Origin: Paragordius varius
Lineage: Eukaryota; Animalia; Nematomorpha
Length of the DNA: 64,000 bases
Assembly: GCA_964247055.1 (NCBI GenBank)
Contig: OZ176058.1
Span: 62,001-126,000, forward strand
Direction of reading: 5' to 3'
In this document: piece after piece, positions 11,232 to 42,099 of the stretch
How positions within the stretch are numbered: the stretch's first letter is position 1
Layout of the letters: each line of letters begins with the position of its first letter
The notes under the pieces: model-generated
What the model saw: the letters and a program-made list of their open reading frames with translations, nothing else
Databases searched by the model: none
What the model was told of the DNA's origin: nothing
Program-made: the position numbers and the translations under genes

Positions 11232-12870
11232 GTATGGAAAAATCACGTCTTTTTAAGTTAATTTTATAAAGAAATTTGGAGGTTCGCTTTAATTATTTGA
11301 TAAAAGTTAATTGTAAAATCCTGGTTATGAAAACACAAAAAATTGAATAGTATGCATTTTGTAGAATTCTCTCTTTAGTAACGCTTTATATGGCGAAAAA
11401 AAATTGATAAAAGTTTTAAGTTTGCGCAGAGAATGAAAAATTTGAGGAACGTACCAATGCCCTTGTTAGGAAGAACAAAAAATTGAATGGTATATACCTT
11501 TTTGAGAATTATATCTTGTCTTTTTTATATTAAGATTTAAGAAATTTAGAGTGTCGCTATAACTATTTGATAAAAGTTTTTAACTGCTTAATGCTGAGAA
11601 TAAAAATGGTCCGGGTTGGCAAAATTAAAAACTAATATAGTATATTATCTAAATTTATCATTTAGATTTAGGTTTTTTAAGTTGCCCAGCTTAGAAATTT
11701 AAAAATTAAATGAACGCAACAATGCCATTGTTAGGGAAAACTAAAAATTGAATGGTATATAATCTGTAAAAATCACGTTTTTATAAGTTTAGATTAAAGA
11801 AATTTAGAGTGTCGCTATAACTATTTGATAGTTTTTAACTGCTTAATGCTGAGATAGTAAAATTAATGATTTATTATCTAAATTTATGATTTAGATTTCG
11901 GTTTTTTAAGTTGCCCAGCTTAAAAATTTTAAAAATTCGATAAAGGCAACAATGCCCTTGTTAGGGAAAACAAAAAATTGAATGGTACATACTTTGAAAA
12001 AAATCATGTCTTTTTTAAGTTAAGATTTATGAAATTTAGAGTGTCTCTATAACCATTTGATATAACTGCCTAAGGCTGAGATTAAAAATGGTCCGGGTTG
12101 GCAAAAACTAAAAACTAATTGTTTATTATCTAAATTTATCATTTAGATTAGGTTTTTAAGTTGCCCAGCTTAGAAATTTTAAAAATTCGATAAAGGCAAC
12201 AATGCCCTTGTTAGGGAAAACAAAAAATTGAATGGTATATAATCTGTAAAAATCACGTTTTTTTTAAGTTTAGATTAAAGAAATTTAGAATGTCGCTATA
12301 ACTATTTGATAAAAGTTTTTAATTAATGCTGAGAAAATATAATCATCTGGGTTGGCAAAAACTAAGAACTAATGGTTTATTATCCAAATTCATCATTTAG
12401 ATTTCGGTTTTTTAAGTTTGCGCAGAAAATAAAAAATTAAATGAACGCAACAATGCCCTTGTTAGGGAGAACAAAAAATTGAATGGTACATACTTTGAAA
12501 ATGTCATGTCTTTATAAATTATGATTTAAGAAATTTAGAGTGTCGCTATAACTATTTAAAGTTAATTGTATGATCCTGGTTATGGAAACACAAAAAAATG
12601 AATGGTATATATAACTGTGCATGTTTTTTTAAGTTAAGATTAAAGAAATTTAGAGTGTCGGTATAACTATTTGTTAAAAGTTAATTGTAAAATCCTGGTT
12701 ATGGAAACACAAAAAAATGAATAGTATGGATTTTATAGAATTCTGTTTTTTAGTAACGCTTTTATGGCGAAAAATTGATAAAAGTTTTAAGTTTGCGCAG
12801 AAATTTAAAAATTGAATGAACGCAATAATGCTCTTGTTAGGGAAAACAAAAAATTGAATGGTATAAATTT
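11232..12870 (+). repeat. ~250-bp repeats echoing the exon-8 3' end and donor
   Basis: AATGCCCTTGTTAG...AAAATTGAATG|GTA near 11457, 11721, 11951, 12201, 12452, 12828. Confidence 0.92.
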
Positions 12871-14634: not shown

Positions 14635-14799
14635 GTTTTATATATACCTTAAGCATAAAATTCTACTAAATATTCAATTTTTGTGGAATTTAAGCACAGA
14701 CTTTAGAAGTAACACGATTATATAAAGCACATAAAAGTTTTAAGAGATATTTTAATTTTGTGCAAAAACTGCCCACAGAAATGTGCCCAAATTATAGGC

Positions 14800-16090
14800 T
14801 ATATTTCTAAAAATCTTTGAATGTTATACCAAAATTCCATCAGTGATTTGGCTACCGCTAAAGTCGAGTTCGAGCGCAGACTTCAAGAAAAAGAGGATGA
14901 ACTTGAACATACAAGGTTATAATTTATTAAATTAGCGGTTAAGATACTATTACTTGACTGGTATAAAATTGCGGAGTAACTGGTTTTATAAGTTAAAATT
15001 TTATTTAGAGCTAAAAATATTTGTAGTCTAAGGGCAAAAATCAAGTATTTCTTAATTGTTGACTGAAAGATTAAATATCTCAAAAATTAAAATTTAAAAG
15101 CTTGCGATTGTTAATTTAGTCACTAGTTATTTGGCTGCTGATAAGGTTGAGTTCGAGCGCAGACTTCAAGAAAAAGAGGACGAACTTGAACATACAAGGT
15201 TTAGATTTTAAATTTAATTATAAATAGTGGTTTTTAATTTTACCTGACTGGTTAAAATTGGGAACCAAACTTATTTAGTTTAGTTAAAATTTTATTTAGA
15301 CATAAAAATGCAGTTTAAAGGGCAAAAGTTCAGTATTTTTAATTCTCAATTGTTGACTGAAAGTTTAAATATCTCAAAAATTAAAATTTAAAAGCCTGCG
15401 CTAATAAGGCCATCAGTGATTTGGCTGCCGCTAAGGTCGAGTTCGAGCGCAGACTCCAGGAGAAAGAGGATGAACTTGAACATACTAGGTTCGATAAAAT
15501 TTAATTATAAATAGTGGTTTTTAATTTTACCTGACTGGTTAAAATTGGGAACCAAACTTATTTAGTTTAGTTAAAATTTTATTTAGACCTAAAAATGCAG
15601 TTTAAAGGGCAAAAGATTTTGACTGAAAGTTTCAATATCCCAAAAATCTTTTCTTGCCTTATTAAAATTTAAAAGCTTGCGATTGTTAATTATTCAAATT
15701 TAAAATAAAGTCATTAGTTATTTGGCTTAAGGTTGAATTTGAGCGCAGACTCTAGGAGAGAGAGGATGAACTTGAACATACAAGGTTTTATATACCCTAA
15801 TATTCAATGAATGTATACAAATTATCTACAAGACATGCAAAATATATGAAAAGCTTATAGTTGTTGAAATTTGGCAGTATAAAGTCAAAAGTGGAATTTT
15901 TTAAGCACAGACTTTAGGAGGGAACATGAACTAAAGCACACTAGATAGAAAGTTGAAAGGTATGTTTTAACTTTACTGAATACTGCCTACCAAAATATGT
16001 TCAAATATAAGCTCATATTGGAAATTTAAAACTCAGTGTTTTGGCTGCCGCTAGGTAGAATTTGAACGATTTTAGGAGAAAGAAAAAGGT
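14800..16090 (+). repeat. ~290-bp repeats echoing the exon-9 3' end and donor
   Basis: GAGTTCGAGCGCAGACT...GAACTTGAACATAC near 14838, 15121, 15395, 15710; degraded copy near 16035. Confidence 0.92.
15395..15488 (+). CDS. Candidate short alternative to exon 9 (intronic copy of its last 94 nt)
   Basis: TTTAAAAG|CC ... AG|GTTCG; phase 1 to 2 like exon 9; 8 synonymous and 1 non-synonymous differences from exon 9. Confidence 0.35.
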
Positions 16091-20455: not shown

Positions 20456-21686
20456 GTAAATACTCTTATTCACAAAAGTTTCAACTAGATTTATAAGTTT
20501 TTGAGTATAGTAAGTATTTAAATGGTTGATAATCTATAACTGGTTCTCTGTTTGTGAATTATTCGGTCTGTAGAAGGAAAATTGATTTAATCTTTTATTT
20601 TTGAATATATCGGTGAGGTTTTGGAAAAAATACTTAAGGCATATTCAGGCCGCCGAACAACAAGTAAATACTCTTATTCACAAAGTTTTCAACTAGATTT
20701 ATAAGTTTGATTATAGTAAGTACCTAAATGTTTAGGCATTCAACTGGCTCACATTTATTGCTAATTATTAGCTCTGTAGAAGGAAAATTGATCTAACCTT
20801 TTATTTTTGATTATATCGGAAATATTTGAAAAATATGAACTTATAGGGCATATCTTAACATTTTCCAAATATATTCCATATTTTTTTACCTGATCATAAA
20901 ATATATATAAATAATTTTATTAAGCCCAATTTGTCGCTTAGTCGAATATAGTGTAAAAACTGAAATTGTACGGACAAAACGTAAAAATATAAACAATATT
21001 TTTTTTTAGAGAACAATTATACTTCTTCAAAACTTAATTTTTGATATAATAATGATTTAAAATTTTAAACTAGCTTGTTGATTGTGCTACCAATTAACAT
21101 TTCTATTTTAGATTTTGCAATTTAAAACAATCAGTTTTATTAAAAAAGTTGTTTAAAAAAAATATTTGTCTTTATATTTTTACATTTTGTCCGTATAATT
21201 TCATTTTTACTGTAAATACTTAAGTGTTTAGGCATTAAACTGGCTCACATTTATTGCTAATTATTAGCTCTGTAGAAGGAAAATTTATCTAACCTTTTTT
21301 TTTATTATATCGGTAAATTTTTGGAAAAAAATATGAACTTATAGGGCTTATCTCAAGTAAATAGAGTTTTTATAACAATTAAATAATTACTTTTTAACTT
21401 TACATTAATTTTCCAATGTTTTTATGGAGGAATACATTTTCGTGTGTAATTATTAATATAAAAACTCAGTAAAAGTTAAAACTATATTTTAGTCAAGTTT
21501 TAGATTTGAGAATAATAAATATTTGAATGATTGCTCATTCAACTGGCTCTCATTAATTTTCTTTTATTAGCTATAAGTCTCAGGGTTTTTGTATAGAAAA
21601 TTTACTGTTTTTTTGGAAAATATTTATGCCTTAACCCACCCACACCTTCCTTAAATCTTAAAAATGGTTCGGATCCATAATTGCTT

Positions 21687-24314: not shown

Positions 24315-26800
24315 GTGAGTATTTACTTAATTAATCGAGGGATATTTAGTTTTTATCTAAAGTTTGATTTTTATTAATAGTTTATGCAGATATAATTGAC
24401 TTAAGTCCTTTTATAATATAAAATACTCTAGTTATTTGAAAATATAAAGAACAGTCGATATTGTAAGTATTAACTTGCTTACATATTACTCAAGGGATAT
24501 TTAGTTTTTGAATTTTAAAATTTGATTTTTTACAATAGTTTAAGGTTTTTAGCCTAGGTTGTTTAAAAATTATACATTACTTTAGTAATTTATCTAAAAA
24601 AGCATTTGATTGCTTACATATATTACTCAAGGGATATTTAGTTTTTGAGTTTTAAAGTTTGATTTTTTACAATAGTTTGCGTTTTTAGCCTAGGTTGTTT
24701 AAAAATTATACATTACGTTAGTAATTTATCTAAAGAAGCATTTACTTGTTTAAATATTACTCAAGGGATATTTTATTTTTGATTTTAAAATTTGATTTTT
24801 TATAATAGTTTTATGCAGATATTTTTAGCCTAGGTTGTTTATAAATTATACATTAGTTTAGTAATTTGAATATCTAAAGTATAAGCATTTACTTGCTTAC
24901 ATATTACTCAAGGGATATTAAAGTTTATTAATAGTTCTATGCAGATATTTTTGGCTTAAGTCCTTCCTTTAATTTTACAAAATACTCTAGTTATTTGAAA
25001 ATATAAAGAACAAGTCGGAAATATTGTAAACATTTACTTGCTTAGGGATATTTAGTTTTTAAATTTTAAAGTTTGATTTTTTACAATAGTTTAAGGTTTT
25101 TTGCCTAGGTTGTTTAAAAATTATATAAAATACTTTTGAAAATATAAAGATAAGCATTTACTTGCTTACATATTACTCAAGGGATATTTAAAGTTTGATT
25201 TTTTACAATAGTTGACGGTTTTTAGCTTAAGTCCCTTTAATTATATATAATACTTTAGTTATTTGAATATCTAAAGAACAAGTCGTAGATATTGTAAGCA
25301 TTTACTTAATTAATCGAGGGATATTTAGTTTTTGAATCTTAAAATTTGATTTTTTACAATAGTTTAAGGTTTTTAGCCTAGGTTGTTTAAAAATTATATA
25401 TAACTTTAGTTATTTGAATATCTAAAGAACAAGTCGGAGATTTTGTAAGCATTTACTTGCTTACATATTTCTCAAGGGATATTTAATTTTTGAATTTTAA
25501 AATTAGATTTTTATTAATAATTCTATGCAGATATTTTTGGCTTAAGTCCTTTAATTATATACAATAGTCTAGTTATTTCAAAATATAAAGAACAAGTCGG
25601 ATATATTGTAAGCATTTACTTGCTTACATATTACTCAAGGGATATTAAAGTTTATTAATAGTTCTATGCAGATATAAATGACTTAAGTCCTTTAGTTATA
25701 TATAATACTCTAGTAATTTGAAGATCTTTTTTTACCCTAACTGCAAAAGCAAGTGTAAATTGACCAAGCATGTTTTTTTCATATAATTCGTGAAGGATTT
25801 GATTTAAAAAGTTCAAGTTTTTGGCCTAAGTTGTTTTATACTACTTTATTAATTTAAACTCATTTTTACCTTTTTAACTGCAAAAGCAAATGTAAACCAA
25901 GGTTTATAGCCATTTAGCATGTTTCTTTTCATATAAATCGCGAAAAAATTTGATTTTTTACAATAGTTTAAGGTGTTTAGCCTAATTTGTTTAAAAATTA
26001 TATATTACTTAAGTAATTTGAATATGTAAAGAACAAGTCGGAGATATTATAAGCATTTACTTAATCGAATCGAGGGATTTGTTTTTTATCTAAAGTTTGA
26101 TTTTTTACAATAGTTTTATGCAGATATTTTTGACTTAAGTTGTTTTATATTACTTTATTAATTTAAACTCATTTTTACCTTATTAAATGTAAAAGCAAAT
26201 GTAAATTGACCAAGGTTTATAGCCATTTAGCATGTTTCTTTTCCTATAATTCGCGAAAAATTGGATTTTTAAAAAAGTTTGAGGTTTTTAGCCTAGATTG
26301 TTTAAAAATTATACATTACTTTAGTTATTTGAATATCTAATGAACAAGTCGGATATATTGTAAGTATTTACTTGCTTACATATTACTCACTCAAGGGATA
26401 TTTAGTTTTTGAATGATAAATTTTGATTTTTATTAATAGTTTTATGCAGATATTCTTGACTTAAGTTGTTTTATACTACTTTATTAATTTGAATATCTCC
26501 TTTATTACCTTTGTAACTGTAAAAGCAAGTGTAATTTTACCAAGGTTTTATAGCCATTTAGCATGTTTCTTTTCATATAATTCACGAAAAATTTAATTAT
26601 TTACAATAATAGTTTAAGGTTTTTGGTCTAAATTGTTTAAAAAATATACATTACGTTAGTAATTTGAAAATATAAAGATCAAGTCGGATATATTGTAAGC
26701 ATTTACTTGCTTACATATATTACTCAAGGGATATTTAGTTTTTTAATAATTCTATGCAGATATTTTTGACTTAAGTCCTTCCTTTAATTTTATAAAATAC
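24315..26800 (+). repeat. Complex tandem repeats echoing the exon-15 3' end and donor
   Basis: AAAGAACAAGTCGG.ATATT|GTAAG near 24440, 24997, 25270, 25420, 25580, 26027, 26337, 26668. Confidence 0.9.
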
Positions 26801-27029: not shown

Positions 27030-28320
27030 TGGATAATTACTGAAATTAATTTATCAAATTATTTCTTTTTTTAAATATTTTTAACCAATACATAAACTTG
27101 TTAATTTTCACTAATTTACTGAAATTAATTTATCAAATCATTTCAATATATATTTTTTGAAACAGTTGAAATACTTTTTAAAATATAAATTGTTTTTTAC
27201 CAATCTTTTCGAAACTGCTATAGCAAAAAGTGTGAATTAAAGGTTTTATGGTCATTTATTAAAGCTAATGAATAAAATAATGTTTTCAATATATCAAATC
27301 ATACCATAAATTAATAACTTTATATTACTAGTTAAAGAAATAAATTTGTAAATTTTCATTAATTTACTAAAATTAATTTATATCATCTCTTTAAATAAAA
27401 TATTTTTAACCAATACATAAACTTGTAAATTTTCACTGATTTTCTGAAATTAATTTATCAAATTATTTCTTAAATAAAATATTTTTAACCAATTACCTGT
27501 GTTTTATTTTATCGTTCACTAGGAAATTTTTACTGATTTACTGAAATTAATTTATCAAATCAATTCGTAAAATAAAATATTTTTAACCAATGTATAAACT
27601 TGTAAAATTTCACTGATATACTAAAATTAATTTATCAAATCATATTCTAATAAAATTTATTTAACCTATATATAAACTTGCTTCTTAATGAAATTAATTT
27701 AGCAAATCATTTCTTTTCTTAAAATATTTTTACAAAAAACATAAACTTGTTAATTATTAGATTTTACTAAAATTAATTACAAATCATACCATAAATGTAT
27801 AATACAATGTATTTTATCCAAAATACCTTGTAAATTTTCACTGATTTACTAAAATTAATTTATCAAATCATTTCTCAAATAAAATATTTTTAACCAATAC
27901 AAACACTTGTAAATTTTCACTGATTTACTAAAATTAATTTATCAAATCATTTCTTAAATAAAATATTTTTAACCAATACATAAACCTGCTAATTTATTAG
28001 CATTTAATAAAATTAATTTATCAATTCATTTCAAATGTATAATACTTTTTATTTTTAACCAATACATAAACTTGCTAATTATCATTAATTTACTGAAATT
28101 TATTATTAAATTATTTCTTAAATAAAATATTTTTATTAACGCAAATCACCTAATATTTTTTTTATCGTTCTTCTGCTTTAGGAAACTTTGGCAGTAATTT
28201 ATTAAAACATCTCTTAAATAAAATATTTTTAACCAAAACATAAATTTGCTATATTAGAATTTACTAGCAAACTTTTTTTTAAATGTATAATAATTATCGA
28301 AAATTACTCGTAAATTTTCC
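27030..28320 (+). repeat. ~110-120-bp repeats upstream of exon 16, with duplicated acceptor copies
   Basis: TTTACTGAAATTAATTTATCAAAT...TTTTTAACCAATACATAAACTTG units; TTAG|GAAACTTTGGCAGT copy at 28182. Confidence 0.85.
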
Positions 28321-28326
28321 GTTTAG

Positions 28327-28557
28327 GAAACTTTGGCAGTTCAACACTTGGCAAAGAGTCGAAGATTCCAGAAAGAACTCGAAGATCAAGAAGCCCGGGC
28401 AGAAATGGCCGAAAATAATTTGGTGAGATTGCGCGCTAAAAACCGCGGTGGAGTTTTCGTGGGACCTGCGCCTGCCCCTATCGTTACTGCTCAGTTGGTT
28501 CCTCAGGCAGCTATCCCTTACGTTCGCGTGAGTAACAGTCAATCACCTTACCCTTAA
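28327..28557 (+). CDS. Prm: Paramyosin exon 16 (ETLAVQHL...PYVRVSNSQSPYP*), terminal in the short isoform; internal donor at 28528
   Basis: TTTAG|GAA; TAA 28555-28557; contains phase-0 CGC|GTGAGT. Confidence 0.92.
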   Translation, partial: ETLAVQHLAKSRRFQKELEDQEARAEMAENNLVRLRAKNRGGVFVGPAPAPIVTAQLVPQAAIPYVRVSNSQSPYP

Positions 28558-29075
28558 GAAATTTTCAACTAAAACCCACTTTTCAAAACTAAAAAACTCT
28601 CGATAACTCACCCCTGACCGTTTTTTTTCCTTTATATCACCCCCTCACTTGTAATTCTTTAAGAGGTGGTCCTAAACTTTTCTTAAACGAAATTATAAAC
28701 CAAGTTTTTGCAATTAATCAATCACCTTACCCTTAAACTCTAAAAAATTTACTGAAAATCTTAAAAATCACTTTTCAAAACTAGAAAAAAATCAAATTTT
28801 CAAGCAACTATTATAAATAACAACTGTACACCCTTTTTCCAATGAGGTTAACATATACACAAATTTAGACTACCTTATTTTAAACCGTCTTTTTCCCTCT
28901 CCCTTCTTTTAAACGGCTTTCACAACTAAAAATCAAACTACTTTTTAACTAAAAAACTCTCGATAACTCTCCCCCCCTGACCGTTTCTTTTCTTTATATC
29001 ACTCCCTTACTTATAATTCTTTAAAGAGGTCCTACTTAAACGAGATTTTAAACCAAGTTTTTGCAGTTAACATAA
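28541..29075 (+). repeat. Duplicated blocks in the short-isoform 3' UTR, including a second CAATCACCTTACCCTTAA stop motif
   Basis: 28590-28720 resembles 28945-29070; stop-region echo at ~28720-28737. Confidence 0.75.
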
Positions 29076-31256
29076 TCCACCCATCTATCCAACCATCTAT
29101 TTATCTTATATATATAAATTTGTGTATTTCTTTTTATGTTTTACCAATTTTTGGCTGCAAAGCTTATATTTTGTAATATGCGGCAATAATTAAAGTTTTT
29201 CTAATCAAAAATCCATTTTTGTATATTTAACTCTGCTTTTACTATTTTTTGTCTTACATTTTCTTATTATGATATGATATGTGCACATAAAATAACCCAA
29301 CCAACATTTGTAAAAATATTAATATTGATTGTATTTATCAATCTACCATAATTAATAATCAATTATGCATCCATTTTGAAGTGCAATATAACAAAATCTT
29401 ATTAACATTCACAGATTGTTGTATAATAAACAACCAAACTCTTGAATAATTTTTAAAGTTTGCCATAATTTAGATATATAAATCGGTGCGAATTGGCTTT
29501 TATTTTTAATTTTTCGTAAATTTTTTTTATATATCAGAGCTAGTTTAGGTAAGGTAGAGAGTAAACTTTATACGAAACAATTTGATATATCTAATACTTT
29601 TTTTACATACAATAATTACGAGCATTGAATCAATCATATATGTATAATTTCACCTTTTTTTTTCTCATTTAAAAAAGCGTTTTTTTTGTTTTACCAACAA
29701 GAAGATATTTTTTGCCTAATATCATTTCTATTTAACTGTACATTTTATTATATATTTCCTTATATGAGATACATTTATTTTTATATATGATTTTCCACAA
29801 CATTATTTTTACCCCAACATCTAAAAAATACATAAAATATCTCACAATTATGTGCAAATGATTGAAAATAAATACGGATTTTGATCAAATATAGCTTTTT
29901 CCTATTATATTTTTTATCCATAAAAAAAATTTAAATAGAAAAGCTTTTTAAAACTGGAATTATAAACTACATCATATCATAAAATCAGACAAATTTAACC
30001 ACCATATATTATCTGACCATATATACATTTTTTATCACGAACTGTATATAGAGTAAAAATTAAAATTATACGGACTAAATGTAAAAAATATAAAGAATTT
30101 TAAAAGACAACCATACTATTTTAATCTTATTGTTTTGAACTATATTTTAAAATAGAAATGTAAATTGGTAACACAATCAATTATGTAGTTTACGATTGTT
30201 AAATATTTCATATAAGTTTAAAAAAGTATGGTGTTTTATGAAAAAAAATATTTCTTTATATTTCTACGTTTTGTCCGTATAACTCAGTTTTTAATAATAT
30301 TATATTGAGACCTAGAAAAAATTGAAAACATACAGACGAATTGGTTAAACATTTAAATTTTTTGATAATCATAAATTATATTCAAAAATATTAAAGTTGA
30401 AAAAAAGATATCTAACTTAACAAAAAAGCATTTGAGTTTTAGTTATCACGTTTGTGTATTATATCAATTTTTATTGAAGTAAATAATGGATAATTAAAAA
30501 TTTATTATCGTTTTAAATTTAAAAGTTTTGACAGGTCAACATCCATTAAAGGAGTAGTTTTTAAGGCACATATATCGAAATTCTATCCTTTTTACATAGA
30601 TTAATCCCAAATATAGAAATTCTATCCTTTTTATATAGATTAATCCCAAAACTGCATGTTTTATATATAAAGAGTAATGCATGCTTATATTTTTTGGCTG
30701 GCTGAAAAAAAACGCTTTTTATTTAGAAATATTTTCTCGAAAACAAATATATTCCACATTTCAAATTACGTTAATTTCAATCCTCAACACATATCACCCC
30801 TTGCCTTTTCACATTCTAACCACTTAACAAAAAAATATTGCATTTTTAATTCCTTAAGTTTAACATTTCCTAAGATAATGGCTATTAATATTACAGTAAA
30901 AATTGAAATTATACGGACAAAAACGTAAAAACATAAAAACACATGTTTTTTTTAAAAAGCCTACCATAGTTAAATCCAAATTAATCCTGGTAAAATGCTT
31001 AGTAATATAAGCCTAAAATATATAATTTATTATGTTACCAATATAAATGACTTTGGAAATAAAAAACAATGAGTTAAATTTAAATCCATCAAGATTTAAA
31101 AACTATGGTTGTTTTTTGGAAAAATAGACTAAAAACTGGAAATATACAGACAAAAGGTAAAAATACAAAGATAAATATTTTTTTCTAAATGATAACCATA
31201 CTTTTTTAAACTCCATTTTTTAAAATATAACTAACTCATTGTTTTAAACTGCAAAA

Positions 31257-33285: not shown

Positions 33286-33547
33286 CAGTAGAAGCTGAAA
33301 TTATACGGACAAAACTTATATAAAGACAATAATTTTTTTCTAAAAGACAACAATTTTTTAAAAAATTTTGACATATAAAATATTTAATTACCATCGTATA
33401 ATACATAATTGATTAATTTCTATATTATATTTGTAGGTTAAAACAATCAGTTAAAAAAATCAAGATTACAAAAGGTATAGTTGTCTTTTAGAAAAAAATA
33501 TTTGTATGTATATTTTTACGTTTTGTCCTTCATATAATTATTTACTG
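33286..33547. mobile_element. MITE-A copy in a dense MITE cluster (30050-33870)
   Basis: TIRs present; further copies at about 30050, 30893, 31130, 31696, 32178, 32795, 33647. Confidence 0.8.
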
Positions 33548-33969
33548 CATTATTTGTGATAAGTTGATATATAATTGAATAATACTTTAAATTTCAAATT
33601 AAACATTATTTCAAAAAGTACTTAAATAATACTTTAAATTTTAATTTACAGTAAAAATTGAAATTATACGGACAAAATAAATGATACTATTTCAAACCTT
33701 AATTTGTCCTATTAAAAACAAATACATAAATTGCTTCATTTTACACCTTTATTTCCTACTTTATAGTTAAAAACAATGGTTATATTGATATAAATCTAGA
33801 TTTATTGAGTATGGGGTTGTCTTTTAGAAAAACATATTTGTCTTTATAGTTATGTCCGTATTTCAATTTTTAATTTACTTTAAATTTCAATGAAATATAT
33901 TTCAAAAATACTTAAATAACACTTTAAACTTTCAATTTTTATTGTACTATCCCTTTTTATATATATTAG

Positions 33970-34167
33970 GATTACTATAATTTTGAAGAGTCTGTAATAA
34001 ACAGACGTCGTAGAGGAAGTATTATTGAAGGTGGTTCATCTGGAATTCAATATCAAACTGTTCACCAACATAGCTATAATCAACCGAGAATTTCTGGACA
34101 TTATGTTTCGGCTGTTTTACCTCAACCGCAAAACTCTTCTAGAAGATATTCAATCATTTCTTTTTAA
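33970..34167 (+). CDS. Prm: Probable alternative terminal exon 17 of paramyosin (DYYNFEESVINRRRRGSIIEGGSSGIQYQTVHQHSYNQPRISGHYVSAVLPQPQNSSRRYSIISF*)
   Basis: TTTTTATATATATTAG acceptor, phase 0 matching the GTGAGT donor at 28528; 65 open codons; variation among downstream copies is mostly silent in this frame. Not in the ORF track because it lacks a start codon. Confidence 0.72.
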   Translation, partial: DYYNFEESVINRRRRGSIIEGGSSGIQYQTVHQHSYNQPRISGHYVSAVLPQPQNSSRRYSIISF

Positions 34168-37100
34168 ACTCATTTTACTTTTTTTACATTTCAAAATGGA
34201 TAATAGTTAAAACATTTGCTTTTTTTATATAATTTGTTTATATTTTGGCTTAAATATATGGATATCGTAACAAATTTTATATTCAATATCAAACTGTTCA
34301 CCAACATAGCTATAATCAGCCAAGAATTACTGGCCATTATGTTTCGGCTGTTTTACCTCAACCACAAAACTCTTCTAGAAGATATTCAATCATTTCTTTT
34401 TAAACTGATTACTTTTTTTTTATTCCAAAATGGATTATAATAGTTAAAACATTTGCTTTTTTTATATAATGTTCATATTTTGGCTTAAATATATGGATAT
34501 CGTAACAAATTTTATATTCAATATCAAACTGTTCACCAACATAGCTATAATCAACCAAGGATTTCTAGACATTATGTTTCGGCTGTTTTACCTCAACCGC
34601 AAAACTCTTCTAGAAGATATTCAATCATTTCTTTTTAAACTCATTTTACTTTTTTTACATTTCAAAATGGATAATAGTTAAAACATTTGCTTTTTTTATA
34701 TAATTTGTTTATATTTTGGCTTAAATATATGGATATCGTAACAAATTTTATATTCAATATCAAACTGTTCACCAACATAGCTATAATCAACCGAGAATTT
34801 CTGGACATTATGTTTCGGCTGTTTTACCTCAACCGCAAAACTCTTCTAGAAGATATTCAATCATTTCTTTTTAAACTCATTTTACTTTTTTTACATTTCA
34901 AAATGGATAATAGTTAAAACATTTGCTTTTTTTATATAATTTGTTTATATTTTGGCTTAAATATATGGATATCGTAACAAATTTTATATTCAATATCAAA
35001 CTGTTCACCAACATAGCTATAATCAGCCAAGAATTACTGGCCATTATGTTTCGGCTGTTTTACCTCAACCACAAAACTCTTCTAGAAGATATTCAATCAT
35101 TTCTTTTTAAACTGATTACTTTTTTTTTATTCCAAAATGGATTATAATAGTTAAAACATTTGCTTTTTTTATATAATGTTCATATTTTGGCTTAAATATA
35201 TGGATATCGTAACAAATTTTATATTCAATATCAAACTGTTCACCAACATAGCTATAATCAACCAAGGATTTCTAGACATTATGTTTCGGCTGTTTTACCT
35301 CAACCGCAAAACTCTTCTAGAAGATATTCAATCATTTCTTTCTAAACTGATTACTTTTTTTTATTTCAAAATGGATTATAATAGTTAAAACATTTGCTTT
35401 TTTTGATTAATTTGTTTAATTTTGGCTTATATGGATATCGTAACAAATTTTATATTCAATATCAAACTGTTCACCAACATAGCTATAATCAACCAAGAAT
35501 TTCTGGACATTATGTTTCGGCTGTTTTACCTCAACCGCAAAACTCTTGTTCTCATAGAAGATATTCAATCATTTCTTTTTAAACTGATTACATTTTTAAT
35601 TTCAAAATGGATTATAATAGTTTAAACTTCAAAATTTGCTTTTTTCAAATAATTTGTTTATATTTTGGGTTAAATATATGGATATCGTAACAAATTTTAT
35701 ATTCAATATCAAACTGTTCACCATAGCTATAATCAACCGAGAATTTCTGGACATTATGTTTCGGCTGTTTTACCTCAACCGCAAAACTCTTCTAGAAGAT
35801 ATTCAATTATTTCTTTCTAATCAGATATTCTTTTTATTTCAAAATGGATTATAATAGTTAAAACATTTGCTTTTTTTAATCAATTTGTTTATATTTTGGC
35901 TTAAATATATGGATATCGTAACAAATTTTATATTCAATATCAAACTGTTCACCAACATAGCTATAATCAACCAAGAATTTCTGGACATTATGTTTCGGCT
36001 ATTTTACCTCAACCGCAAAACTCTTCTTCTCACAGAAGATATTCAATCATTTCTTTTTAAACTGATTACATTTTTAATTTCAAAATGGATTATAATAGTT
36101 TAAACTTCAAAATTTGCTTTTTTCAAATAATTTGTTTATATTTTGGGTTAAATATATGGATATCGTAACAAATTTTATATTCAATATCAAACTGTTCACC
36201 ATAGCTATAATCAACCGAGAATTTCTGGACATTATGTTTCGGCTGTTTTACCTCAACCGCAAAACTCTTCTAGAAGATATTCAATTATTTCTTTCTAATC
36301 AGATATTCTTTTTATTTCAAAATGGATTATAATAGTTAAAACATTTGCTTTTTTTAATCAATTTGTTTATATTTTGGCTTAAATATATGGATATCGTAAC
36401 AAATTTTATATTCAATATCAAACTGTTCACCAACATAGCTATAATCAACCAAGAATTTCTGGCCATTATGTTTCGGCTGTTTTACCTCAACCTCAAAACT
36501 CTTCTAGAAGATATTCAATCATTTCTTTTTAAACACATTATACTTTTTTATTTCAAAATGGATAATAGTTTAAACTTCAACATTTTGGCTTTTTTAATTA
36601 ATTTGTGTATATTTTGGCTTAAATATATGGATATCGTAACAAATTTTATATTCAATATCAAACTGTTCACCAACATAGCTATAATCAACCAAGAATTTCT
36701 GGCCATTATGTTTCGGCTGTTTTACCTCAACCTCAAAACTCTTCTAGAAGATATTCAATCATTTCTTTTTAAACACATTATACTTTTTTATTTCAAAATG
36801 GATAATAGTTTAAACTTCAACATTTTGGCTTTTTTAATTAATTTGTGTATATTTTGGCTTAAATATATGGATATCGTAACAAATTTTATATTCAATATCA
36901 AACTGTTCACCAACATAGCTATAATCAACCAAGAATTTCTGGACATTATGTTTCGGCTATTTTACCTCAACCGCAAAACTCTTCTTCTCACAGAAGATAT
37001 TCAATCATTTCTTTTTAAACTGATTACATTTTTAATTTCAAAATGGATTATAATAGTTTAAACTTCAAAATTTGCTTTTTTCAAATAATTTGTTTATATT

Positions 37101-40100
37101 TTGGGTTAAATATATGGATATCGTAACAAATTTTATATTCAATATCAAACTGTTCACCATAGCTATAATCAACCGAGAATTTCTGGACATTATGTTTCGG
37201 CTGTTTTACCTCAACCGCAAAACTCTTCTAGAAGATATTCAATTATTTCTTTCTAATCAGATATTCTTTTTATTTCAAAATGGATTATAATAGTTAAAAC
37301 ATTTGCTTTTTTTAATCAATTTGTTTATATTTTGGCTTAAATATATGGATATCGTAACAAATTTTATATTCAATATCAAACTGTTCACCAACATAGCTAT
37401 AATCAACCAAGAATTTCTGGCCATTATGTTTCGGCTGTTTTACCTCAACCTCAAAACTCTTCTAGAAGATATTCAATCATTTCTTTTTAAACAGATATTC
37501 TTTTTATTTCAAAATGGATTATAATAGTTAAAACATTTGCTTTTTTTAAATTATTAGTTTATATTTTGGCTTAAATATATGGATATTGTAACAAATTTTA
37601 TATTCAATATCAAACTGTTCACCATAGCTATAATCAACCAAGAATTTCTGGCCATTATGTTTCGGCTGTTTTACCTCAACCGCAAAACTCTTCTAGAAGA
37701 TATTCAATCATTTCTTTTTAAACACATTTTAATTTTCACTTTTTAAAATGGATTAATAGTTAAAACATTTGCTTTTTTTAAATTATTAGTTTATATTTTG
37801 GCTTAAATATATGGATATCGTACTAAATTTTATATTCAATATCAAACTGTTCACCATTATAGCTATAATCAACCGAGAATAACTGGCCATTATGTTTCGG
37901 CTGTTTTACCTCAACCGCAAAACTCTTCTCACAGAAGATATTCAATTATTTCTTTCTAAACCCATCTTTTTTTATTTTTACATTTCAAAATGGATTATAC
38001 TATGAAAGGACAAAACGTAAAAATATTTTCTACTAAAACCATACTTTTAGAATTTTAATTTATATATAACTCATTGTTTCAAACTCTTCTCACAGAAGAT
38101 ATTCAATCATTTCTTTTTAAACTGATTACTTTTTTTTTTCAAAATGGATTGTAAAAATAATTGCTTTTTCAAATAATTTGTTTATATTTTGGCTTAAATA
38201 TATGGATATCGTAACAAATTTTATATTCAATATCAAACTGTTCACCATAATTATCAACATAGCTATAATCAACCAAGAATTTCTGGACATTATGTTTCGG
38301 CTATTTTACCTCAACCGCAAAACTCTTCTAGAAGATATTCAATCATTTCTTTCTAAACAGATATTCTTTTTATTTCAAAATGGATTATAATAATTGCTTT
38401 TTTCAAATAATTTGTTTATATTTTGGCTTAAATATATGGATATCGTAACAAATTTTATATTCAATATCAAACTGTTCACCAACATAGCTATAATCAACCG
38501 AGAATTTCTGGACATTATGTTTCGGCTGTTTTACCTCAACCGCAAAACTCTTCTAGAAGATATTCAATGATTTCTTTCTAAACAGATATTTTACATTTTT
38601 ATTTTTTTAATTTTAGAGTTAAAACATTTGCTTTTTTCAAATTATTTGTTTATATTTTGGCTTAAATATATGGATATCGTAACAAATTTTATATTCAATA
38701 TCAAACTGTTCACCATCATAGCTATAATCAACCGAGAATTACTGGCCATTATGTTTCGGCTGTTTTACCTCAACCGCAAAACTCTTCTAGAAGATATTCA
38801 ATCATTTCTTTCTAAAACTAAAACTTTGATTTACATTTCAAAATGGATTATAATAGTTTAAACTTCAAAATTTGCTTTTTTTTAAATAATTTGTTTATAT
38901 TTTGGCTTAAATATATGGATATCGTAACAAATTTTATATTCAATATCAAACTGTTCACCATAGCTATAATCAACCAAGAATTTCTGGACATTATGTTTCG
39001 GCTGTTTTACCTCAACCGCAAAACTCTTCTAGAAGATATTCAATCATTTCTTTCTAAACTGATTACTTTTTTTTATTTTAAAATGGATAATAGTAGTTTA
39101 AACTTTAAAATTTGCTTTTTTTAAATAATTTGTGTATATTTTGGCTTAAATATATGGATATCGTAACAAATTTTGTATTCAATATCAGACTGTTCACCAA
39201 CATAGCTATAATCAACCAAGGATTTCTGGACATTACGTTTCGGCTGTTTTACCTCAACCGCAAAACTCTTCTTCTCACAGAAGATATTCAATCATTTCTT
39301 TTTAAAACTAAAACTTTGATTTTTAATTTTTAAAAATGGATAATAATAGTTTAAACTTCAAAATTTGCTTTTTTCAAATAATTTGTTTATATTTTGGCTT
39401 AAATATATGGATATCGTAAGAAATTTTATATTCAATATCAAACTGTTCACCAACATAGCTATAATCAACCGAGAATTACTGGACATTATGTTTCGGCTGT
39501 TTTACCTCAACCGCAAAACTCTTCTAGAAGATATTCAATCATTTCTTTTTAAACAGCTTTTTACTTTTTTATTTTTTGATTTCAAAATGGATTAGTTTAA
39601 AGTTCAAAATTTGTTTTTTTTTAAATTTTGGCGGAAAAATATGGATATTGTACAATATTATAGACTGTCATCAACTATTTTATTTATACATTTCAAAATG
39701 GATAATAGTTAAAACATTTGCTTTTTTTAAATTATTAGTTTATATTTTGGCTTAAATATATGGATATCGTAACAAATTTTATATTCAATATCAAACTGTT
39801 CACCAACATAGCTATAATCAACCAAGAATTTCTGGACATTATGTTTCGGATGTTTTACCTCAACCGCAAAACTCTTCTTCTCACAGAAGATATTCAATCA
39901 TTTCTTTTTAAACACATTTTACTTTTTTTTATTTCAAAATGGATAATAGTTAAAACATTTGCTTTTTTTTGAATTATTAGTTTATATTTTGGCTTAAATA
40001 TATGGATATCGTAACAAATTTTAAATTCAATATCAAACTGTTCACCAACATAGCTATAATCAACCAAGAATTTCTGGACATTATGTTTCGGCTGTTTTAC

Positions 40101-41240
40101 CTCAACCGCAAAACTCTTCTAGAAGATATTCAATCATTTCTTTCTAAACTGATTACTTTTTTTTTATTTCAAAATGGATAGTTAAAACATTTTCTTTTTT
40201 TATATAATGTTCATATTTTGGCTTAAATATATGGATATCGTAACAAATTTTATATTCAATATCAAACTATTCACCATAGCTATAATCAACCAAGAATTTC
40301 TGGACATTATGTTTCGGCTGTTTTACCTCAACCGCAAAACTCTTCTAGAAGATATTCAATCATTTCTTTCTAAACTGATTACTTTTTTTTTATTTCAAAA
40401 TGGATAGTTAAAACATTTTCTTTTTTTATATAATGTTCATATTTTGGCTTAAATATATGGATATCGTAACAAATTTTATATTCAATATCAAACTATTCAC
40501 CATAGCTATAATCAACCAAGAATTTCTGGACATTATGTTTCGGCTGTTTTACCTCAACCGCAAAACTCTTCTAGAAGATATTCAATCATTTCTTTCTAAA
40601 CTGATTACTTTTTTTTTATTTCAAAATGGATAGTTAAAACATTTTCTTTTTTTATATAATGTTCATATTTTGGCTTAAATATATGGATATCGTAACAAAT
40701 TTTATATTCAATATCAAACTATTCACCATAGCTATAATCAACCAAGAATTTCTGGACATTATGTTTCGGCTGTTTTACCTCAACCGCAAAACTCTTCTAG
40801 AAGATATTCAATCATTTCTTTCTAAACTGATTACTTTTTTTTTATTTCAAAATGGATAGTTAAAACATTTTCTTTTTTTATATAATGTTCATATTTTGGC
40901 TTAAATATATGGATATCGTAACAAATTTTATATTCAATATCAAACTATTCACCATAGCTATAATCAACCAAGAATTTCTGGACATTATGTTTCGGCTGTT
41001 TTACCTCAACCGCAAAACTCTTCTTCTCACAGAAGATATTCAATCATTTCTTTTTAAACTGATTACTTTTTTTTATTTCAAAATGGATTATAATAGTTAA
41101 AACATTTCTTTTTTTATATTTTGGCGTAAAAATATGGATATCGTAACAAAATTTATACACTGTCAACTCTAAAACTAAAAAAAAAAATTATTTCAAATGA
41201 ATATGGATATTGTAATAAATTTTATACACTGTCGACCTTA
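34168..41240 (+). repeat. Tandem array of ~226-247-bp units (28 full copies plus partials) derived from the 3' part and stop codon of exon 17
   Basis: Core ATTCAATATCAAACT...AGAAGATATTCAATCATTTCTTTTTAA counted 29 times including the exon; period visible in the ORF track. Confidence 0.97.
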
Positions 41241-42099
41241 AACTAAAAAATCTTTAAAATCGTTATAGCGGATTAGAATTTCAAATTTTTATAAAGAATA
41301 AGGATATCTATATCCTAAACAAATAACGCTTCTTAGAGAAAAATCAAAGCACCTTAAATTTCGCCTAAAAAAATGACTTTTTAGTTTTTAAGTTGACAGT
41401 TATTTGCAAAATAATTTGGACTTTAAATTTTATTTTAAGGTTTTTTTTTCATTTTTATTTGTAATTTTATAATTATTATATATACTGTCCTAAACGGTTC
41501 CGTTGTTTTTATGTAGCATTTCGCAATAACAAATATATTCTGTTCAAAAATTTAACAAATTTGCATATTAGACTAGTATTATATTTTATCAAAATCTTAT
41601 TAAACGCATTCATAATGAGTATCACTAATTTGAAAGCTTTTAATAGCAAATAATATTTCTTTATTTATATATGAAATTATTTCTTACAATGTGTGCAACA
41701 TTTTTTATTTTCAAAAATGCCAAATTTTACCAATTCTGGAATTTATACATATATACGAAACATTGAAAAATAAATGTGTTTGTGCTTTCTTATTTTTTAT
41801 TCGTTTACAAAATATTTATAAAGTTTAAAAATATAAATACAAAATTTATTTATAAAAGACCTCTTTACTTTTTATTCGTTTTAAATTTTTATATAAATTT
41901 TAAAATATAAAATTCTTTTTCAAAACCCTTTTATACATTTTAAAATTGACGTTTTTAATAAACTCATTGTTTTAACTGCAAAGTATGAAATAGAAATGTA
42001 TATTGGTAACAAAAACAGTAACATATTTTACAATTATAATTTAATAATTTATATGGGTAAATTGTTGGTTACTCTTACAAAAAGGAAATAATTTTCTTT

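Follow-up and report, generated by a model that had tools for sequence, protein, structure and literature searches.

The window analysed here, a 64,000-nucleotide stretch of the Paragordius varius genome (C9:62001-126000; positions without a contig label refer to the window), carries on its plus strand a headless, paramyosin-like myosin-tail gene. The animal genome has 110.6 Mb and a GC content of roughly 22%. The alternative terminal exon of this gene is continued by a tandem array of 29 head-to-tail units of 226-253 bp, namely the true exon end and 28 copies of it (Table 1). Tandem copies that cannot be spliced into a transcript are expected to decay. Nonetheless, the 28 copies, together with one more at a second locus, keep their frame, stop and amino acids while their silent sites drift. 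The assignment of the gene rests on a search in which exons were compared one by one rather than as the joined spliced protein: they match the Pfam family Myosin_tail_1 (PF01576) at 52.5 bits, and no Myosin_head match was found anywhere on the contig. By this exon-by-exon search the gene encodes a Myosin_tail_1 coiled coil but no motor domain, as a paramyosin should. It is the only gene of the Myosin_tail_1 type on the contig, the nearest other gene with a tail-like match being on contig 5. The penultimate coding exon, where the coiled coil ends, has a strong donor. The terminal exon comprises 65 codons behind a conserved acceptor, and its protein is 97% identical to that of the sole other genome copy, while the flanking intron is only about 80-85% identical. 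No relatives of the tail peptide were returned by a word-based protein search limited to proteins of 36-114 aa or by a metagenome scan.

The repetition begins at codon 26 of the terminal exon, and the interior units are without its first 25 codons. When units are counted by anchoring on the unit start, the first is the exon end at 34045 and the last starts at 40932; Tandem Repeats Finder (TRF) reports arrays of period 226-253 spanning 34045 to 41119. A typical unit has 236 bp, about 123 nt of them exon-derived and about 110 nt flank. All 29 units translate in the exon frame into 39-43 codons that end in ...RRYSIISF and are followed by TAA. The original prediction, an earlier note made on this DNA, had described 28 tandem copies of the exon end with a kept stop, and this is what we find: 28 copies plus the true end, with TAA in 29/29. 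Perfect repeats of 590-750 bp occur inside the array, and diverged blocks mark three sub-array ends, after u22, after u28 and after the second unit of the paralogous array described below. A search against Rfam found no known RNA family in the array.

Variation among the units is of the coding type, far beyond chance. The distinct substitutions across units comprise 12 synonymous and nine non-synonymous changes, none touches the stop, and 14 of the 21 are at codon position 3. Using a neutral spectrum taken from a 3.2 kb non-coding alignment of this locus with its paralogue, random changes are expected to be synonymous in 20-28% of cases and to create or destroy a stop in 7-10%. In neutral resampling under five mutation models, including ones with CpG boosted tenfold and transitions boosted fourfold, the probability of 12 or more synonymous changes was 1e-4 to 3e-3 and that of 14 or more changes at position 3 was 3e-4 to 1.6e-3. 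The excess is seen in the exon frame only. The other five reading frames give just 1-7 synonymous changes of 20, and the 27 in-frame nt directly upstream of the units hold five variants, none of them synonymous and one a stop. Synonymous diversity (piS, with pi for nucleotide diversity) is 0.095 and non-synonymous diversity (piN) is 0.0135, so that piN/piS is 0.14; by codon positions 1, 2 and 3 the diversity is 0.023, 0.003 and 0.065. The variable half of the spacer reaches a pi of 0.148, compared with 0.025 in the 42-nt block ahead of each unit. The peptide of unit 0 is encoded exactly by six units through four different nucleotide sequences. Along the unit, the ratio of non-synonymous to synonymous changes by thirds is 1.5, 0.8 and 0.36, numbers too small for a test.

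Insertions and deletions follow the same rule. Those in the coding part are all multiples of three (-3, +3, +6 and +9), which holds for 4/4 events in the units of the window and for 5/5 if the second unit of the paralogue is included. Elsewhere, such lengths make up 7/64 in non-coding alignments, 7/48 after removal of simple slippage and 3/18 in the array spacers, and Fisher tests of the contrast give 0.005 and 8e-5. The original prediction had listed the same indel sizes and had counted about 11 synonymous against 6-8 non-synonymous variants; both observations are borne out, and the context-aware neutral models that it had asked for reject neutrality for substitutions (1e-4 to 3e-3), and the test of indel lengths gives 8e-5 to 5e-3. 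It had also suggested that CpG decay and triplet slippage explain part of the pattern. However, sites that involve CpG vary no more than the remaining C/G sites: in the comparison of window positions 28265-31069 and 41239-42054 with the paralogue, 28/104 of them differ (27%), compared with 268/757 (35%) of the other C/G sites. CpG sites are not hypermutable, and CpG decay therefore explains none of the pattern; the figures suggest that there is little or no CpG methylation-driven mutation in this genome. In the non-coding differences between window and paralogue, A-T transversions account for 37%. Triplet slippage is plausible at the (CAN)n and TCT-TCT sites, but only there.

Interior units cannot be spliced in by the normal route, because they lack both the first 25 codons of the exon and a splice acceptor. 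None of the 28 copies has an AG within the 40 nt that precede it, and an in-frame TAA stands nine codons upstream, in agreement with the original prediction, which had found no AG ahead of the coding part. The AGs inside the units (AGC and AGA codons; CATAG/C or CCAAG/A, with the slash marking the junction) are all in phase 2, and joining them to a phase-0 donor would give Leu and then a stop. Only two weak phase-2 donors are present, at the exon end at 28493 (CA/GTTGGT) and at 33989 (GA/GTCTGT), and no U12-type donor (RTATCCTY) occurs on the plus strand between the penultimate exon and the array. Hence no unit has a 3' splice site of its own in phase with the upstream donor, as alternative terminal exons have. 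A U6atac gene was found at C2:4857045-4857187 (66 bits, above the Rfam cut-off), and therefore the genome has a minor spliceosome. Together, the 42-nt block and the first 21 nt of the unit make up an element that shows conservation at every codon position (pi 0.025); the part with the synonymous excess follows immediately downstream. We considered Dscam-like docking or selector pairing and self-structure for this element, and neither beat shuffled controls: the best duplex with the upstream intron has -30.9 kcal/mol against -26.2 +/- 2.5 for shuffles, which we count as no better, and there is no stable fold beyond the shuffled controls. For a -1 frameshift at AAATTTT from an ATG in the block, no stimulatory structure was found.

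Sequence has been exchanged between the array and the expressed exon end. The most direct trace is a 590-bp stretch in units 3-5 that is identical to 34045-34634, a segment that runs from the expressed exon end through its spacer and the following unit and takes in most of the third; the identity starts exactly at the first base of the homology. Recent exchange involving the expressed copy is visible this once, and it may have gone either way. Within the 123-nt coding part, the minimum number of recombination events (Rm) is at least 5. Furthermore, the expressed exon end differs from the paralogous expressed exon end at four positions, and 4/4 of these differences are also present in units of the array.

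The paralogue, the sole other copy in the genome, is an inverted partial duplicate of the last three exons with a two-unit array (C9:26334-36314). Its non-coding DNA is 12-15% different from this locus. The penultimate exon differs from its paralogous copy by seven substitutions, 7/7 of them synonymous. The paralogue appears to be expressed in some form, because its two exons preceding the terminal one differ from those here by 12 substitutions while the amino acids are 100% identical. Behind its terminal exon lies one further unit, also intact, whose ACT, GGC, SH-insertion and TTC states match interior units here. These shared states imply either that an arrangement of two or more units predates the duplication or that the two loci exchange sequence. 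In the one assembly available, the number of units is two at the paralogue and 29 here.

We regard the array as a minisatellite of the 'mirage' type, in a terminal-exon variant that evolves in concert with its exon. The best-supported reason for its copies staying intact is shared selection on the one expressed unit; whether this is right is close to an even call. In such a scheme, unequal crossing-over on an older satellite of about 115 bp just downstream of the alternative last exon would have built the array. Each 236-bp unit is a complete 3' module, in which the final 40 codons and the stop are followed by a variable 3' flank and the conserved 42-nt block. By unequal crossover and gene conversion, unit sequences would continually enter and leave the single expressed position; where such exchange is frequent compared with drift (4N lambda of about 30), all copies would come to share the purifying selection that acts on the expressed one. 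Array and exon would then evolve as one family, and the interior units would stay codon-clean. Multigene families under concerted evolution are the classical case of this kind (Ohta/Nagylaki theory): conversion and unequal crossover share both mutations and selection among members, and diversity between copies grows with copy number times heterozygosity. The difference is that the family considered here would have a single expressed member, the other 28 being protected only second-hand. Both the exchange rate and the role of shared selection, as opposed to expression of the copies, in keeping them intact are what we infer.

Simulations indicate under which conditions this could work. The original prediction had proposed that the array exchanges sequence with the working exon, either archiving alleles or acting as a set of silent donor cassettes. 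Exchange is upheld by the 590-bp identity, but a passive archive is not. When a single lineage evolves by unequal crossover and conversion with selection on the first unit only, and is matched to a piS of about 0.1, piN/piS comes to 0.7-0.95 and never to 0.2 or below; nearly all snapshots hold stop-bearing copies, in runs with and without conversion biased from the first unit. With all units selected, the same simulation gives 0.14. A population model behaves differently. In a Wright-Fisher toy with selection on unit 0 only, eight units, whole-unit conversion and fixed copy number, the effective piN/piS of silent units is 0.67-0.95 at 4N lambda of 3 or less. At 10 it is 0.34-0.39 under limited recombination and 0.16 under free recombination, and at 30 or more it is 0.13-0.17 provided that haplotypes recombine at 0.05 or more per generation. 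At 4N lambda of 10-30, the units still differ considerably from one another at silent sites. When rescaled to 29 units, the fit corresponds to a synonymous heterozygosity of close to 2% and to some 1,600 exchanges for each point mutation per unit, both values being implied by the model; such an exchange rate is ordinary for a minisatellite.

Several points weigh against shared selection as the explanation. The simulations are toys, their rate and heterozygosity are model values, and the fit is lost when exchange is rarer; tighter linkage at 4N lambda of 100 gives 0.31. The second unit of the paralogue has no private coding change despite the 12-15% non-coding divergence, which needs either exchange between the loci or direct constraint. 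In addition, the layout of the conserved 63 nt resembles a 3' splice region ahead of the AG in CATAG/C, and the model accounts for the block only if the expressed unit, whichever it is, requires it in its 3' flank.

A reading that dispenses with selection on the copies altogether is that they are snapshots of alleles: working exon ends sampled recently from highly divergent haplotypes and free of selection, which unequal exchange between alleles has stacked up and which disappear before they decay. It predicts differences with a synonymous bias, length variants that keep the frame and a 3' flank that looks neutral, and the 590-bp event does show working-exon sequence entering the array. However, if all 12 synonymous variants were alleles, this would demand a synonymous theta of about 0.12, a value close to the maximum known from any species, and the growth that is visible is mostly internal amplification of blocks of 2-4 units rather than serial import. 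Moreover, a unit lineage at equilibrium is the expressed one for only about 1/n of the time, and therefore copies should decay under this scheme. Nor can sampling of a locus's own alleles explain that the interior unit of the paralogue has five or more states in common with interior units here. We consider allele snapshots unlikely.

The opposite possibility, direct expression, takes the interior units for real alternative last exons, read in the exon frame and reached by a route without visible canonical signals. Their piN/piS of 0.14 is as low as that between the two expressed exon ends (about 0.2), the 63-nt stretch conserved at all codon positions is just upstream of the synonymous-biased part, and an AG in CATAG/C or CCAAG/A is present in every unit, with the weak phase-2 donors at 28493 and 33989 as potential partners. 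An internal echo exon of the same gene (15392-15491), with acceptor, donor and eight synonymous against no non-synonymous changes, also points this way. On the other hand, the strong donor that precedes the array is in phase 0 and all constitutive AGs of the units are in phase 2, which leads to Leu and then a stop; the 40 nt ahead of the units hold no AG and the upstream region no U12-type donor, and for the conserved element no docking-type pairing with the intron was found, nor a stable fold. Such direct expression seems quite unlikely to us. We would rate just as low the broader idea that the interior units are put to use in one way or another, whether as alternative last exons through an unrecognised splice route with the 63-nt element as the 3' splice region, or as a recombinational reserve from which the expressed exon receives tail variants in the germline or the soma. 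The tail variants on offer are few and conservative: S or T at position 17, loss or gain of a Q, gain of SH beside the RRYS phosphorylation-type motif, and also V/I changes. That the whole is a neutral satellite, its coding-like pattern due to chance, mutational bias or an assembly artefact, is very improbable: the array was picked post hoc from a very large scan of a single assembly and some indel sites resemble triplet repeats, but the substitution (1e-4 to 3e-3 under five models) and indel (8e-5 to 5e-3) tests, the restriction of the synonymous excess to the exon frame (0/5 and one stop in the 27 nt upstream) and an independent two-unit copy with the same properties at the second locus all speak against it.

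It is instructive to compare the array with known systems. In silent-cassette banks, such as pilS/pilE in Neisseria, vls/vlsE in Borrelia and the pseudo-V genes of chicken, donation is programmed, fast and one-directional, and the cassettes are diverse and under diversifying selection. The array shares with them truncated open-frame copies that are not expressible as such (here they lack an in-phase acceptor), adjoin one expressed copy and exchange with it by recombination. In contrast to those banks, its variants are few and conservative and selection is purifying (piN/piS 0.14). With conservative variants, and with purifying instead of diversifying selection on them, nothing points to a programmed system, and the donor-cassette part of the original prediction is not sustained. 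The closest parallel is found in amphioxus, where 'mirage' minisatellites in Adh3 and in the globin genes BflGb6 and BflGb9 consist of head-to-tail units of an exon edge and adjacent non-coding DNA, with the authentic edge at one end; their units are 81-100% identical and evolve in concert inside the cluster, while the boundaries are excluded from homogenisation (PMC3087553, in the sections drawn on here). Exon sequence plus flank in each unit and an authentic expressed edge at one end are seen here as well, and so are concerted evolution within the array (the perfect 590-750 bp repeats) and boundaries left out of it (the diverged sub-array ends). Unlike the amphioxus mirages, which sit at an exon-intron junction, this array of 29 units spans the stop and 3' flank and duplicates no splice site, whereas donor sites are part of other arrays of the gene. 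Its copies also have a quantified protein-coding signature, and none is reported for the amphioxus mirages in those sections (PMC3087553). Tandemly duplicated exons that serve as alternative or mutually exclusive exons, such as the Mhc and Dscam clusters of Drosophila, consist of copies with splice sites of their own, according to the parts of the source used here (PMC9013439). Common to these clusters and the array, as far as that description goes, are serial exon duplication in a muscle-protein gene, coding constraint on the copies and a conserved element ahead of each (PMC9013439); unlike theirs, the units here lack an acceptor in the phase of the upstream donor.

If the shared-selection reading is true, the array would be a clean case in nature of silent repeats shielded by the one expressed repeat beside them, and coding-like variation alone would be no proof of translation, which bears on gene annotation and on dN/dS scans for function. 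The array also offers a way to approach the rates of exchange in exon-edge arrays, by which many introns of this genome are lengthened. If, instead, the copies were expressed, a thick-filament protein would have an alternative C-terminus system of a new kind, and use of the interior units by either route would mean that an animal muscle gene has a working cassette array.

Table 1. Terminal exons and array of the paramyosin-like gene (positions in the window; a slash marks a splice junction)
Feature	Position	Strand	Remarks
Penultimate coding exon (exon 16 of the original prediction), end of coiled coil	28327..28528	+	Acceptor cgtttag/GAA, donor CGC/GTGAGT, phase 0; read from the sequence
Read-through alternative: tail VSNSQSPYP + TAA (stop 28555-28557), conserved ~0.9-kb 3' untranslated region (UTR), AATAAA at about 29425	28529..29430	+	Putative; from identity with the paralogue
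Alternative terminal exon (exon 17 of the original prediction): DYYNFEESVINRRRRGSIIEGGSSG + unit 0 + TAA	33970..34167	+	Acceptor tatatattag/GAT, phase 0
Unit 0, expressed copy: 40 codons + TAA (34045-34167), variable spacer, conserved 42-nt block (34239-34280)	34045..34280	+	
Units u01-u28, each with coding part, TAA, variable spacer and conserved block	34281..41057	+	Higher-order repeats of 2-4 units seen
590-bp stretch identical to 34045-34634	34752..35341	+	Exchange of the expressed exon end with interior units is traced most directly here
Insertion derived from a miniature inverted-repeat transposable element (MITE; 37999-38080), then 5'-truncated thirtieth copy (38081-38120: last 13 codons + TAA)	37999..38120	+	
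Spacer-only repeat of 'terminal type' inside unit 22 (GGCG..., then ...TATAGACTGTCATC replacing the coding part)	39553..39700	+	Resembles end of the two-unit paralogous array
Array end: last spacer and two degenerate spacer-only repeats (junctions 41157, 41226)	41058..41262	+	

The region behind the penultimate exon is probably the 3' UTR of a second isoform whose protein ends in a read-through tail. Compared with the paralogue it shows 80-100% identity in 60-nt windows, while the intron as a whole is about 85% identical. The spacer-only repeats at the end of the array and in unit 22 belong to the older satellite of about 115 bp, on which the 236-bp unit would have been built. A short MITE-like family with the core GGACAAAACGT / ACGTTTTGTCC is scattered through the introns of the gene, with 17 exact cores in the window (e.g. 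at 33460-33560 and 37999-38080), and in the array one of its fragments (37999-38080) has destroyed a unit over two thirds of its length.

In almost all units (34216-41100) the +1 frame stays open, for 55-93 aa and once for 238 aa over three units (36345-37061), which is unusual at 22% GC. As a constrained open reading frame it was ruled out, since its substitutions are four synonymous versus 15 non-synonymous.

The gene contains further arrays. The 3' ends of four internal exons, at 11.2, 14.6, 20.5 and 24.3 kb, are echoed in tandem in the downstream introns, each echo with its donor: seven at 11320-12864, four at 14819-15794, one at 20647-20708 and seven at 24998-26708. Several echoes have decayed (stops, 4-5-nt indels), and the core of exon end plus donor is kept better than the rest of the unit. 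The presence of echo arrays at other exon ends of the same gene favours a generic recombinational cause. The echo at 15392-15491, which derives from the exon ending at 14637, has an AG before it and a GT behind it, and with eight synonymous and no non-synonymous changes it is likely to be a real alternative, shorter exon.

It is also worth mentioning that two in-frame candidate starts with good donors lie just upstream of the first exon of the paralogue (C9:27592-36348, minus strand), beside an element bearing terminal inverted repeats. These are ATGACT/GTAAGT at C9:36348 and ATGTCGGAG/GTAAGG at C9:36336, with introns of 51-69 nt, and the paralogue may be a stand-alone 'mini-paramyosin' gene encoding about 210 aa.

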